This document shows, in pieces, positions 47,861 through 62,142 of a stretch of DNA of 64,000 nucleotides. The translations under genes and the position numbers were made by a program. Under the pieces are notes generated by a model. It saw nothing but the letters and a program-made list of their open reading frames with translations. It ran no database searches and had not been told where the DNA came from. Numbering within the stretch: position 1 is the stretch's first letter; every line of letters begins with the position of its first letter. This stretch comes from Octopus sinensis. Taxonomy: Eukaryota. The stretch covers positions 85,250,001 through 85,314,000 of the forward strand of contig NC_042999.1 of NCBI RefSeq assembly GCF_006345805.1. Reading direction: 5' to 3'.

Positions 47861-47967
47861 TTAAAAATTTAATATGATTCCCTGTTCGGTCAATTCTGAC
47901 TGGATCCTGGCATCCATTATCTCACTTTGCTCAACAGTCAACCATTTTTTCCATGTATCCACTTTAC
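47861..47967 (-). CDS. Sulfotransferase-fold protein, terminal coding exon 5
   Basis: CAATTTTTAG|GT acceptor in phase 1. Reads GKVDTWKKWLTVEQSEIMDARIQSELTEQGIILNF-TAA. The five exons sum to 900 nt (299 aa plus stop), with AATAAA motifs downstream near 47570-47660. Confidence 0.88.
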
Positions 47968-49020
47968 CTAAAAATTGTATGAAAACAGTAAAGAAATAAG
48001 TATATAATGTTTAATTAGACATTGTGGCATCATTACGTATATGTGTCTCTGTATTTTGGTGTGTGTGTGTATGTGAGTGTGTGTGTGTGTGTGTGTGTGT
48101 ATGTGAGTGTGTGTGTGTGTGTGTGTATGTGTGTATGTGTGTGCGTGTGTGAGTGTGTTTGTGTGTGTGCGCGTGCGCGCATATGTAAGAGAGGAGTGAG
48201 AGATGGGTCTAAGTCTGCGTTTACAAATGACGAAAAGTACTCAATACATGGCGTATAGTATGATTATTTTGATGCTAAAGCCTTTTGAATCGCAGCATGT
48301 TTCCGATTTAATCAACACACATACGCACGCACACACACATACACACACACGCGCGCATATAGATGTATATATGTATATATATTTAAATTTTCTCTGCGTT
48401 TGGTTTTGTTACACAGCGTCGATTTTTACATTTCTGTAAATAATAATAATAGTATTTCATAAGCTAAAAGCTTATGTGATCACTGTGAAATGACTAGTAG
48501 TCTAATAATGAGGCACATAAGCTCTCGACGGAAAACCTACTGCTTTCAGTCGAGGGCTTACATGCCCCATTATTAGACTACTTTCTTGCTCGGTGATTGC
48601 TTATCAGCTTTAAGCTTATAATAATGCATACATACATACATACATACATACATACATACATACATACATACATACATACATATATGTGTGTGTGTGTGTG
48701 TGTGTGTGTGTGTGTGTGTGTGTGTGTATTTACGCCCCCGCAACTTAGCGGTTTGGCAAAGGAAACCGATAGAATACGACGGGCTATTTGAGTTTCCGTG
48801 TACCAAATCCACTCACAAGGCTTTCGTCGGACCGAGGCTATAGTAGGACTGAACGCGGAACCATGTGGTTGGTGAGCAAGCTAATTACGAGACATCCACA
48901 TATATGTATGCATGTATGTATATATGCATATGGGTGTGTGTATGTGTGTGCGTGTGTATGTGTGAATGGCCCTGCGCAAGGATGACACACAAATTCCTGA
49001 AGCGTTGCACATTTTTTATA

Positions 49021-49460
49021 GGTGCAGGAGTGGCCATAAGCGCAGGAGTGACTGTGGTAAGTAGCTTGCTTACCAATCACATGGTTCCAGGTTCAGTCTC
49101 ACTGTATAGCACTTTGGGCAAGTGTCTTCTACTACAGCCTCGGACCGACCAAAGCCTTGTGAGTGGATTTGGTAGACGGAAACTGAAAGAAGCATGTCAT
49201 ATATATATATATATATATATATATATATATATTATATATATATATATATTATATATATATATATATATATATATGAGTGTGTAAGTTTGTGTTTGTCCCC
49301 CCGGCATCGCTTGACAACCGATTTTGGTGTATTTACGTTCCCGTAACTTGGCGGCTCGGCAAAAGAGACCGATAGGATAAGTACTGGTGTCGATTTGCTC
49401 GATTAAAGGTGGTGCTCCAGCATGGCGACAGTCAAATGATTGAAACAAATAACAGAATAA
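49021..49460 (+). mobile_element. Family B SINE with internal (TA)n
   Basis: Same two-part structure as 4446-4900, in the opposite orientation. Confidence 0.78.
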
Positions 49461-49757
49461 AAGAAAAAAGATTACCTTGCACTTGCATACTGTTTCTTTA
49501 ATTTTGCAATTAGAGTGTAATCTATTTATTGTGCAATCACAATTTTTACCTATAACTTTTTTTATATATTGTTTTCTTTCCTGGTTATTTCTGTTGTTCT
49601 CTCTGCCCCTTTTATCTTCTAATTCATATTCCGTTTCTTGATATTCGAATTTAGTATCGCTTTCCAATGTGTTATTTTGGTTATTATTCACAACGTCTCT
49701 ATTATTATTATTATTATTATTATTATTATTATTATTATTATTATTATTATTATTATT

Positions 49758-50757
49758 CTGTTGGACTTTTGCTTTATGTTTGAACAAGTTGGCTCCAAGT
49801 CTCACCCAGAGACCTCAAGAGACAGCAGGTTGGAAGTTCACGTTGTTGTTATGCCTAGTGTGCCATATATTTGGGGGGGTTGGGGGGGTTGGGGGGGTTG
49901 GGGGGGTTGGGGGGGTTGGGGGGGTGTACTAGTGAATATCCTTGAGGATATGAGCAGTTCCCATGAGCACTATCTTTTGAATTTATGCCATTTTGGGGTT
50001 TCCTGGTATCTGAGTTAGGTAGCAATCAGCCCCTTTCGCTATCATTCCCAGGGCACCTATGACAACAGGTATTGTTTTAGTCTTCAGCTTCCACATTTTG
50101 CTGATTTCTATTTCAAGATCTTTATATTTGCTCAGTTTTTGGTAGGTCTTGACAGATACGTTTATATCGATTAGGGCAGTCATATCAATGAGGAGGCATG
50201 TTCTTTGTCTGAAGTCTTTCAATGTGATGTCTAGCCTGTTTGCATCTATCTTTCTGTTAGTTTGAATGGTGAAGTTCCAGAGGAGTGAGATGTGGTCATT
50301 TTCAAGCACTGGGGGTGGATTGTGTTCCCACCAGTTTTTTTCATGGGGCAAATCCAGGTTTTTGCAAATTACCCAGTGAATATATTGTGCAGCTCTATCA
50401 TGCCTGTTGAGGTACTCTGTAGGCGCTAGAAGACTGCACTTGGAGACAACATAATCAATGGTTTCATTTTGTTGTCGACATACACGACATGTTGGGCTAC
50501 TGCCGTTCTTTAATATGTAGGCCTGGTAGTTTCTTGTTGGTAGGCATTGATCTTGAGCTGCTATGATAAACCCTTCTGTTTCAGATTTTAAGTCAGAGGC
50601 CATTAGCCATTGATGGGTCAGGGCTTTGTCAATATCTGCATTATTCGCTCTCTTTGGGTATTTGCCATAGAGAGGTTTTTCTTGCCATTTATTATTCAGA
50701 ATATCTAAGGCCGCAGTTTTGGCACAGGTTTTCATGCGCTTAGCTTTTTCTGTGCTT
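49758..50757 (-). mobile_element. R4/Dong 3' fragment with a 250-aa open frame (CCHC plus RLE) and 3' UTR
   Basis: WQEKPLYGKY, ETEGFIIAAQDQ, CRVCRQQNETIDYVVSKC, EYLNRHD and ANRLDITLKD...LLIDMT...KLSKYKDLEIEISKMW. Flanked by (TTA)n on both sides. Confidence 0.92.
49871..49924 (+). repeat. (TTGGGGGGG)6 G-tract array
   Basis: Six G7 runs separated by TT. Confidence 0.92.
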
Positions 50758-59975: not shown

Positions 59976-60089
59976 AGTAGTAGTAGTAGTAGTAGTAGTA
60001 GTAGTAGTAGCAGCAGCAGCAGCAGCAGCAGCAGCAGCAGCAGTAGTAGTAGTAGTAGTAGTAGTAGTAGTAGTAGTAGTAGTAGTAGT
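59976..60089. repeat. (AGT)n/(AGC)n tract at the start of SULT-like intron 2
   Basis: Direct reading. Confidence 0.93.
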
Positions 60090-60099
60090 CAAGACTTAC

Positions 60100-60417
60100 T
60101 TTCCCCTTTCATAAAAAGGTCAAAAAAACTTGATATGTCTCCGTTGTATTCGAACGTCTTAGCTCCTGACAGATGTCTGTAGAAAGTTACAAGCATAGCT
60201 TTCGGGTTGCGGTTCATATATATAATTTTGTGACCCTTCAGCAATTCCGAAGGAAGAAGTTCAATAGGAAGGTGTGAGTTTAAGAATCGTGGAGATTCAG
60301 TAGCTTCAAGTATTTCCATTGGTGCCATTTCTATAAGCAAGTCTTCTTTTATAGCGGAAACTCTTTCACAATTTCCTTTCAGTATCATATTTACCATTTC
60401 AAACACCCAATGGGACC
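60100..60417 (-). CDS. Sulfotransferase-fold protein, exon 2
   Basis: ATTTCAG|GG acceptor in phase 1. Reads SHWVFEMV...ESPRFLNSHLPIELLP...KIIYMNRNPKAMLVTFY...FDLFMKGE. Donor GAAA|GTAAGT (phase 1). Confidence 0.92.
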
Positions 60418-61943
60418 CTGAAATTAATACAATATAAACATATAGTGTTATTTGAGTGTTAACGAAATATATTGACATGTCTATGAAATTTTATTGGAAT
60501 ATTTCGTTTTACAATGGCCTTTCGTAAAGTGGAAATGATTAATCCAATTTATATTATTAATATCTATTTTATAAACTCGTAGTTTCTAGAATCATGTTCC
60601 TTTTTATTTGGGGATACACACCTAAGAATGTGGAATAAACTTGACAAAGGGCAACTGAGGTTAATTAAATACATTACCATGTAACATATGATGTTATGTT
60701 ACAGGTATATAAGCATACAAAATCTTTCGGTGTTTAAGATTGAAGAAGAACGAGTTAAGATAGATATCACATCAGAATAGATTATCCTAATATATTGTGT
60801 TGTATGCTGTGTGAAGAAGTGTATTATTAACCTCGGGTACATTTTTAAATATTAATGTACCGGAGTACATTTCCAAGACACGTGCATACACACAGAGCAA
60901 AAGGAGGAGAAAATGTCTATGAGCGCTTGTATAGCTGTATGTGCGTGAGAGTGTGTATTTGGATGAGCGTGTATGTGTGTGTAGTTAAGTAGTTATCCGA
61001 ACGTATATATTTATATGTATTGTAAAACACTGTAGGACAGTTTACCATTTATCAATAAAACAGGGAATATATTCGATTGAACCAATCGGAAATAGTAAGA
61101 ACAATAATGTGTGACTATTCATTGATTCTATGTAATGCGAGATGATAAGAATCAATTATTTTGTTATGTATGATCATGTGTTGTTCAATAGATCATGGAT
61201 TTCATGGCTCCCCTCTCACTCAAGAAGTCCTTGTACTTGACATTTAACTAATTATATATAGAGGGAGTTAAGTGCTTTGTATACAACAACGAAAATCACA
61301 CACACACACACACACACACACACACACACATACTAGGCCGTTTAGCTGATTGTATCTTCCATTACAAAATCAATATTTTCCAAACCAAAGATGGAAAATA
61401 CTTGATATGCGGTCAAATCTTCAAAAGATGCTGTATTGTCTTTAAAAAAAAATTCCTCTTTGATCATATATCTGCTAGATTACAACCGAACTGGAGCTAA
61501 AAAAAATACAATAACAGCAACAACAATAATAGTTTTTCCCAAAAACTAAGAAGTAGGTAGCAATATTGCAAGGAAAATAGGACGGCCAACTGAGAGAATC
61601 GTTAGCGCGCTAAGCAAACTGCTTAGCGGCATTTCATCCGTCTGTGCGTTCTGAATTCAAATTCCACCCTTTCGGGATCGATAAAGTAAGTACCAGTTGA
61701 ACACTGGAGTCGATGCAATTGACGTGTGCTCTCCCCCAAAATTGCTGGCCTTGTGCCAAAATTTGAAATCAATATTGCAAGTGAAATGGATTGCTTTATT
61801 CTATTACTTGCCAATAGCATTGAAGGATTGAACATTTTTTTTTAGTGTAAACACCATCACATTTGCTTTACACATCGATAAATTACACAATGACGCTTGA
61901 GATACAAAAATGTAGTTTAAGAAATCATATTGTAAAAACTTAC

Positions 61944-62142
61944 CTGCTCCGGGATATGAATACATCAAAATATCATCGGGTCTAAATTTTATTGTGTTTA
62001 CTTTTGGTAAAGCGGATGGTATCATTGGTACACAAATCATACTGTGGCCTTTATAACTATAAACAGGCATTGGATGCCCGTCTTTTCCATAGAATTGAAC
62101 GTAAGTACATTCACTTTCATCTTTTAGTTCTTTCGAATCCAT
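61944..62142 (-). CDS. Cytosolic sulfotransferase-fold protein, coding exon 1
   Basis: ATG at 62142-62140. Reads ...IKFRPDDILMYSYPGAG, matching the SULT F..RPDD....TYPKSG block. Donor GCAG|GTAAGT (phase 1). Confidence 0.88.

Follow-up and report, generated by a model that had tools for sequence, protein, structure and literature searches.

Cytosolic sulfotransferases (SULTs) are textbook conjugating enzymes, and the lysine of their P-loop is near universal. To my knowledge, the best-known conserved exception is SULT4A1, the function of which is still debated. For this atypical, brain-specific orphan of vertebrates (PDB 1ZD1), neither binding of 3'-phosphoadenosine 5'-phosphate (PAP) nor activity in standard assays is seen, yet small molecules such as catecholamines are bound (PMC1847840). 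In sulfotransferases of known structure, the P-loop lysine is in contact with the 5'-phosphosulfate, and a lysine-to-alanine mutant in the 5'-phosphosulfate-binding (PSB) loop of AtSOT18 has no detectable activity (PMC5482895). That a SULT site can be rebuilt for new chemistry is illustrated by SULT7A1 (PMC10939482). In this study I describe a sulfotransferase-like gene of Octopus sinensis that encodes a glycine in place of this lysine (Lys48 of SULT1A1). It lies on the minus strand at 62142-47861 of a 64,000-nucleotide stretch of NC_042999.1 (85,250,001 to 85,314,000; this whole stretch is called the window, and positions refer to it), which corresponds to CM016861.1:85,297,861-85,312,142 in assembly GCA_006345805.1. 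An earlier note, made from the DNA letters only, had proposed that the gene is intact, that its site for 3'-phosphoadenosine 5'-phosphosulfate (PAPS) is degenerate, and that its product has been repurposed. I consider it about an even call that the gene is a functional member of an old cephalopod clade of SULT-fold proteins without Lys48, and that its product would be a dimeric cytosolic binder of small molecules in which canonical sulfuryl transfer is lost or reduced.

The gene was rebuilt mechanically from the raw sequence as five exons of 199, 318, 98, 178 and 107 nt, in all 900 nt that encode 299 amino acids and a TAA stop in an unbroken reading frame. All four introns are of the GT...AG type, and the five-exon model contains no frameshifts, premature stops or broken splice sites. 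Exon 1 (61944..62142; coding nt 1-199, aa 1-66 plus one base) carries the start codon at 62142-62140, which is the first in-frame ATG downstream of an in-frame stop, and the beginning of the 5'-PSB loop (Y63-P64-G65-A66), and it ends in the donor G|gtaagt at 61943-61942; the Gly65 codon GGA at 61948..61950 is the site of the catalytic lysine. Exon 2 (60100..60417; aa 67-172) continues the loop with G67-S68-H69-W70 and encodes the catalytic-histidine motif LNSHLP, with the His115 codon CAC at 60272..60274, the 3'-phosphate-binding (3'-PB) motif RNPKAMLVT and a hypervariable acceptor loop (aa 149-156). Exon 3 (56273..56370; aa 173-205) holds IPNGDYFKH, with NGDY for YGSW, and Tyr200. Exon 4 (52848..53025; aa 206-264 plus one base) contains CSFDKMK, with Phe236 and Met239, a variable cap loop (aa 243-256) and FYHS, in which the codons CAT TCA at 52849..52854 specify His263-Ser264. 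Exon 5 (47861..47967; aa 265-299 and the stop codon at 47863-47861) encodes GKVDTWK and the dimerisation motif. The product is 100% identical over its full length to the RefSeq model 'sulfotransferase 1E1-like [Octopus sinensis]'. The gene model is thus already in RefSeq, but its annotation does not record how the active site has changed. An alternative first exon with a canonical PKSGT could be ruled out, as tblastn searches with eight canonical and family proteins match only the same five exons of the window.

The protein matches the Pfam family PF00685 (Sulfotransfer_1) with 170.1 bits (cut-off 22, E=7.7e-50), aa 55-292 aligning to profile positions 1-253 of 255, and its best phmmer matches in the PDB are SULT1A2 and SULT1A1 (E ~1e-35, about 30% identity). 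An AlphaFold2 model of the 299 residues has a mean pLDDT of 92.3 and a pTM of 0.90, and in Foldseek this predicted structure superimposes on 3CKL, 1Z28, 1LS6 and 4JVL (SULT1B1, SULT1A1 and SULT1E1) with TM scores of 0.82-0.85 and rmsd values of 2.3-2.6 A. The KxxxTVxxxE dimer motif is kept as K271-KWL-T275-V276-EQS-E280, aligned to KTTFTVAQNE of SULT1A1. The preserved reading frame, splice sites and fold that the earlier note had described are thus found again, as is the sulfotransferase identity that it had assigned; its five GT-AG exons and 299-residue protein are borne out by the rebuilt model, by the RefSeq identity and by the exon junctions of an orthologous transcript discussed below.

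Residue states were read from a HMMER alignment to SULT1A1 and a MAFFT alignment of the family, and are given in the numbering of the window protein, with SULT1A1 residues named for reference. The motifs read SYPGAGSHW (aa 62-70), LNSHL (112-116), RNPKAMLVT (136-144), NGDY (175-178) and HSGKVDTWK (263-271). In the first of these, Lys48 is lost to Gly65 and Ser49 is changed to Ala66, Thr51 is conservatively replaced by Ser68, and Gly50 and Trp53 are kept as Gly67 and Trp70. The catalytic base His108 is kept as His115. Arg130 is kept as Arg136, Asp134 is lost to Ala140, and Ser138 has become Thr144, a conservative exchange that preserves the hydroxyl. Tyr169-Gly-Ser-Trp is changed to Asn175-Gly-Asp-Tyr, and Tyr193, Phe229 and Met232 are kept as Tyr200, Phe236 and Met239. 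The 3'-phosphate loop Arg257-Lys258-Gly259 reads His263-Ser264-Gly265, so that both basic residues are lost and only the glycine is kept, at unchanged loop length; Gly262 and Asp263 are changed to Asp268 and Thr269, and Trp264 and Lys265 are kept as Trp270 and Lys271. All substitutions that had been listed from the letters alone (K48G, D134A, S138T, R257H, K258S, G262D and YGSW to NGDY) are therefore present, as is the intact catalytic-histidine motif. Three further changes, Thr52 to His69, Lys106 to Asn113 and Thr227 to Cys234, are not to be read as degeneration, since they are the ordinary state in canonical lophotrochozoan (molluscan and brachiopod) sulfotransferases.

The description of the PAPS site as degenerate holds for the lysine and for the side chains of the Arg-Lys pair, but it overstates the case, because most nucleotide contacts survive. 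The AtSOT18 structure has counterparts of Arg130, Ser138, Arg257, Lys258 and Gly259, and the equivalent of Lys258 makes its contact via the main chain (PMC5482895). Judged by these residues, one 3'-phosphate contact appears weakened (Arg to His), and the protein keeps Arg136 and Thr144, the residues that stack on the adenine, and the backbone of the loop. In the family alignment the equivalents of Gly50, Trp53, His108, Arg130, Ser/Thr138, Tyr193, Phe229, Met232, Gly259, Trp264 and Lys265 are invariant, and that of His108 is invariant across all compared sequences, both canonical and without Lys48.

The loss of the lysine is not restricted to this gene. Among 5.8 billion proteins, a word-indexed search yielded 22 close relatives, every one from an octopod (O. 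sinensis, O. bimaculoides, O. vulgaris, Argonauta hians and one transcript), and 1.84 billion cluster representatives, searched exhaustively with HMMER, contributed further members from Argonauta, after which the matches drop straight to canonical enzymes of other phyla. About 20 octopod proteins from these four species are without Lys48. In an alignment of 107 sequences, this column holds lysine in 82 and arginine in 5 of the 87 non-octopod proteins, and glycine, alanine, threonine or tyrosine in 20 of the 20 octopod proteins. In a distance-based neighbour-joining tree with 200 bootstraps, the proteins without Lys48 are monophyletic (97%) and nested among molluscan SULTs, and they form a ladder with nodes supported by 92%, 83% and 100%. 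In the basal lineage (P0170/P0031) Lys48 is replaced by Ser or Ala and every other cofactor motif is intact. The Argonauta protein P0027 has Tyr48, Thr for Lys258, and Ala-Thr for Gly262-Asp263. Clade B has Thr48, Ala for Asp134, Arg-Ser at 257-258 and Ser-Thr at 262-263, and clade A, which includes the window gene, has Gly or Ala at 48, His-Ser and Asp-Thr. The His-Ser pair is found throughout clade A, except that two members have Thr or Asn for the Ser, whereas clade B retains the Arg. A lysine (Lys266, in HSGK) is conserved in both. This order is the pattern that would be expected of a single ancestral loss of the lysine followed by a stepwise remodelling of the 3'-phosphate loop. The feature is a property of an old, expanded gene family with surviving intermediate forms, not of the window gene alone; within clade A, Tyr169Asn (in NGDY) is the sole substitution private to it, and the remaining ones are common to its relatives. 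The earlier note had asked whether other cephalopods share the substitutions, and they do, in some 20 octopod paralogues and orthologues including those of Argonauta.

On the window gene's chromosome in O. sinensis, clade A is represented by at least seven paralogues, arranged in tandem, head to tail, and the five-exon structure is identical among family paralogues. The main array, in which clade A and clade B genes are adjacent, occupies 75.13-75.27 Mb of CM016861.1 (L003, L005), some 10 Mb from the window gene. A second pair, at 85.3 Mb, consists of the window gene and P0013 (300 aa, also without Lys48; L006 1-4704), its upstream neighbour on the same strand about 5.3 kb past the window end. 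The pair has the same order in O. bimaculoides (L002 1-6718), where exons 3-5 of the neighbour diverge by about 12%. As an Argonauta-Octopus sister pair (P0003/P0004) sits inside clade A with 100% bootstrap, the clade A duplications are older than the argonautoid-octopodoid split. Two further proteins, P0308 and P0309, which read YPASGTHW/YPSSGTHW, share 68-70% identity with the basal octopod member; they lack the lysine at position 48, have intact RKG and GDWK, and occur in many RNA-seq runs (SRR276660xx, ERR12374249; L007-L017). Should they be squid or cuttlefish proteins, the loss of the lysine would predate the octopods. The clade is thus octopod with certainty, and its range may extend further (coleoid).

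Canonical enzymes exist alongside this clade. A search with the sulfotransferase of Watasenia scintillans (BBB86724, P0037) retrieved octopod orthologues (P0183-P0189) with YMKSGCHW, RNPRD and RKGVVGDWK, and O. sinensis, O. vulgaris and Argonauta all possess SULTs with Lys48 and RKG in addition to the proteins without Lys48. This rules out a lineage quirk by which all octopus SULTs would lack the lysine. The canonical cephalopod SULTs (P0037 and the O. sinensis 'SULT6B1 isoform X1' proteins P0184 and P0185) resemble the window protein in the organisms they come from, in length and in the dimer motif, at 31-35% identity. However, they differ from it in carrying the three motifs just given, and they form a separate clade with 100% bootstrap and lie on a different chromosome (a 107 Mb record). 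Because canonical SULTs coexist with it, the clade without Lys48 adds to the normal sulfonation toolkit and does not replace it.

A spliced transcript of 1213 nt (L001) from the meta-transcriptome SRR3401912, identified as octopus (PMC11662614), encodes a protein 81% identical to the window protein. It aligns to all five exons, with breaks at or within a few bases of the predicted junctions (the exon 1 match is 62142-61943), and a further match of about 130 nt precedes the ATG, where 62271..62403 on the minus strand, a probable 5'-UTR (untranslated region) or proximal upstream region, is 70% identical to nt 28-156 of its 5'-UTR. An orthologue of the window gene is thus transcribed and spliced in another octopus.

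In clade A, 66 of 299 positions are invariant, among them the altered motifs and the dimer motif K271-x3-T275-V276-x3-E280. The most variable stretches (aa 35-41, 95-103, 149-156 and 243-256) correspond to SULT1A1 residues 18-24, 82-96, 143-150 and 236-249, which in SULT1A1 make up the acceptor pocket and its gate. With the acceptor-pocket loops set a priori, the ratio of nonsynonymous to synonymous substitution rates (dN/dS) of the window gene is 0.59 in the loops and 0.24 elsewhere against L001, and 0.53 and 0.20, respectively, against the paralogue P0010. Over the whole gene, dN/dS against L001 is 0.17-0.36, depending on the method.

These patterns are consistent with the following course of events. 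The catalytic P-loop lysine would have been lost once, in an ancestor, followed by stepwise losses of Lys258 and Gly262-Asp263, then of Asp134, and then, in the subclade of the window gene, of Arg257. The protein has kept its SULT fold, the motif for homodimerisation, the base at His108 and the residues for stacking on and holding an adenine nucleotide. As the lysine-to-alanine mutant of AtSOT18 is inactive, the octopus protein is without a group needed for efficient sulfuryl transfer, and canonical PAPS-dependent transfer would be abolished or down by at least about 100-fold. By analogy with that mutant, a non-catalytic status is plausible, and so is a repurposed, non-canonical protein as the earlier note had proposed. 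The product would be dimeric, cytosolic and small-molecule-binding, may still hold an adenine nucleotide, and would have had its ligand pocket diversified by tandem duplication, the acceptor-pocket loops being the fastest-changing parts among paralogues; binding of ligands would then be the selected function.

Two sets of observations weigh against this interpretation. The first concerns the copy in the window. Against the syntenic O. bimaculoides orthologue, dN/dS over exons 1-2 (516 nt, 172 codons) is 0.76-1.03, with 30 differences that comprise 22 amino-acid changes and only about 7 that are synonymous; polarised with L001, the changes fall on both Octopus lineages, at about 8-9 nonsynonymous to 3 synonymous each. 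A dN/dS well below 1, for which the earlier note had proposed to check, is thus found against L001 and not at this shorter distance. A similarly high ratio (0.68-0.88) is found for the paralogue pair P0010/P0008 at full length (312 codons). The O. bimaculoides orthologue is annotated as a stub of 175 aa with exons 1-2 only (L002 10001-12827, CM046603.1), and the 10 kb downstream (to L002 22827) did not yield its exons 3-5; an open reading frame (ORF) with an RVT_1 domain lies there. Finally, the exact O. sinensis protein is on no contig beyond the genome assembly, and no transcript of the window copy was seen. Short models of 160-242 aa stand for several more members of the family in O. bimaculoides; the short models, the stub included, could be annotation gaps or real gene decay.

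The window copy may be under relaxed constraint, given the ratio against O. bimaculoides. Within a tandem family with birth-and-death turnover, the gene could then be a copy that is decaying or was recently relieved of constraint, an unprocessed pseudogene in the making, to which the nonsynonymous changes on both lineages, the truncated O. bimaculoides model with its apparent RVT_1 insertion, the private Tyr169Asn and the occurrence of the exact protein in the genome assembly alone would all be agreeable. However, the 900-nt ORF is intact with canonical splice sites, all family-invariant residues are present, and the short-term estimate is very imprecise because it is based on so few synonymous differences. 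Species pairs in clade A are all 82-89% identical, whereas the basal member is 96% identical between Octopus species (and 86% to Argonauta); together with the P0010/P0008 ratio, this marks fast recent protein evolution as a property of the clade rather than of one dying copy. A recent pseudogene is unlikely, since the substitutions are common to about 20 octopod proteins, fold and motifs are invariant, an orthologue is spliced and transcribed, and dN/dS at the longer distance is low; decay of this copy, taken more broadly, I consider improbable as well.

The second set of observations concerns the site itself. The clade has kept His108 and almost every nucleotide contact unchanged at least since Argonauta and Octopus split, presumably more than 100 million years ago, and this is easier to reconcile with an enzyme or a nucleotide-binding protein than with a dead site. 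The replacements themselves, His263, Ser264 (with the two exceptions mentioned), Asp268, Thr269 and Ala140, are invariant in clade A as well, which suggests new constraint rather than simple decay. The gene could thus encode a still-active PAPS-dependent sulfotransferase, or a related group-transfer enzyme, in which another group replaces Lys48, in a fast-diversifying family for detoxification or hormone conjugation. Besides the invariant equivalents of His108, Arg130, Ser/Thr138, Tyr193, Phe229, Trp53 and Gly259, such an enzyme would account for the basal lineage (P0170/P0031, P0308, P0309), well conserved between species and with every cofactor motif but the lysine; the conserved Lys266 of clades A and B could supply the lost charge at the 3'-phosphate, and hypervariable acceptor loops are typical of active SULT families too. 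SULT sites are moreover plastic, as SULT7A1 uses additional His and Cys residues for C-sulfonation (PMC10939482). On the other hand, every one of the 87 non-octopod homologues has K or R at this position of the PSB loop, the AtSOT18 alanine mutant is inactive, residue 48 varies from one subclade to another (G, A, T, Y or S), as would a position that has lost its role, and the canonical SULTs that these genomes keep make sulfonation by proteins without Lys48 unnecessary. Since a rebuilt-site enzyme would show the same pattern of a conserved His115, a conserved nucleotide site and invariant replacements, I regard it as a rather unlikely alternative that nevertheless has to be taken seriously.

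The conserved dimer motif could also be read in another way, namely that the protein is a non-catalytic partner that heterodimerises with canonical SULTs via KxxxTVxxxE and modulates them, or an abundant structural protein in the manner of S-crystallins. K271-T275-V276-E280 is fully conserved, in the same form as in canonical octopus SULTs, and the tandem expansion of an enzyme-derived family has its parallel in the cephalopod S-crystallins. However, this would leave the invariant His115, the nucleotide-site residues and the variation of the acceptor pocket unexplained, and I found no paper that ties a sulfotransferase to a structural role in cephalopods. I would be surprised if either role were correct.

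Returning to the small-molecule binder, a bolder version is that of a coleoid radiation, older than the Argonauta-Octopus split, that gave up the lysine, acquired the new conserved motif HSGKVDTWK and diversified its pockets, as a true pseudoenzyme family, or one with a new chemistry, that would serve as small-molecule carriers or sensors, for example of steroid- or bile-acid-like hormones or dietary xenobiotics, canonical SULTs being retained alongside. I put this forward tentatively, as somewhat doubtful. If true, an independent, old, expanded and selected clade without the lysine would be a natural experiment in the dismantling or rebuilding of an enzyme site, with living intermediates from the loss of Lys48 alone through changes at Lys258, Gly262 and Asp263 to those at Asp134 and finally Arg257. 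The automatic names 'sulfotransferase 1E1', '1C2' and '1C4' in octopus genomes are no evidence of steroid or xenobiotic sulfonation. A case in point is a transcriptome study of the optic gland (bioRxiv 10.1101/340984), in which the genes of the steroid pathway include a 'sulfotransferase 1C2' that may or may not belong to the clade without Lys48.

In the remainder of the 64-kb window, no further sulfotransferase exons or SULT genes were found. An ORF at 3353-3835 (+) has a von Willebrand factor type D (VWD) domain (PF00094, E=3.7e-11) and belongs to a large VWA/EGF/VWD gene (1114-aa model) at about 1-40046 (+), tail to tail with the sulfotransferase-like gene. Two ORFs with GIY-YIG endonuclease domains inside this region, 5481-6728 (+) and 7531-8070 (-), suggest remnants of Penelope-like retroelements. 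Intron 2 of the sulfotransferase-like gene contains gag-like ORFs with a CCHC zinc knuckle (PF00098) at 57993-58232 (-) and 58251-58640 (-), and intron 4 contains an ORF of 250 aa without a Pfam match at 49983-50735 (-), on the gene's own strand; these are probably retroelement debris. Microsatellites are dense at 59937-60092, 56423-56851, 62947-63416, 48022-49350 and 52300-52830. A long trinucleotide run begins about 10 nt past the exon 2 donor, tetranucleotide tracts, in translation repeats of 'YLSI', immediately precede exon 3 and also occur upstream of the gene, and introns 3 and 4 contain long CA/TG-type tracts.

In the literature on octopus cytosolic SULTs, pseudo-sulfotransferases and lysine mutants, I found no description of a lysine-less clade, and the known systems resemble it in part only. 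With the canonical cytosolic SULTs (SULT1A1, 1A2, 1B1 and 1E1), the window protein has in common the fold, about 30% identity and a length of about 300 aa, as well as the catalytic His, Arg130, Ser138 (as Thr), Tyr193, Phe229, Trp53, Gly259 and the dimer motif. It differs from them in Gly for Lys48, His-Ser for Arg257-Lys258, Ala for Asp134, Asp-Thr for Gly262-Asp263 and NGDY for YGSW, and such divergent cofactor states are fixed in the whole octopod clade, although the exact residues vary by subclade. In the cephalopod S-crystallins, a conjugation-enzyme fold derived from glutathione S-transferase was tandem-duplicated and lost its canonical activity. The octopus family, also a tandem-duplicated conjugation-enzyme fold, keeps in contrast its catalytic His and its nucleotide site. 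SULT4A1, with a conserved SULT fold and an altered cofactor site, is the best precedent for a non-canonical SULT that binds a ligand. Orthology to it is ruled out, as 1ZD1 aligns to aa 32-232 only (phmmer E=2.6e-28, weaker than SULT1) and the octopod clade lies among molluscan SULTs. The lesions differ as well: SULT4A1 has Leu for Trp53 and a shortened 3'-phosphate loop (PMC1847840), whereas the octopus protein keeps Trp53 (as Trp70) and the loop length and loses the P-loop lysine and the Arg and Lys side chains. Moreover, SULT4A1 is a single, slowly evolving gene, whereas the octopus proteins without Lys48 form a fast-evolving tandem family.

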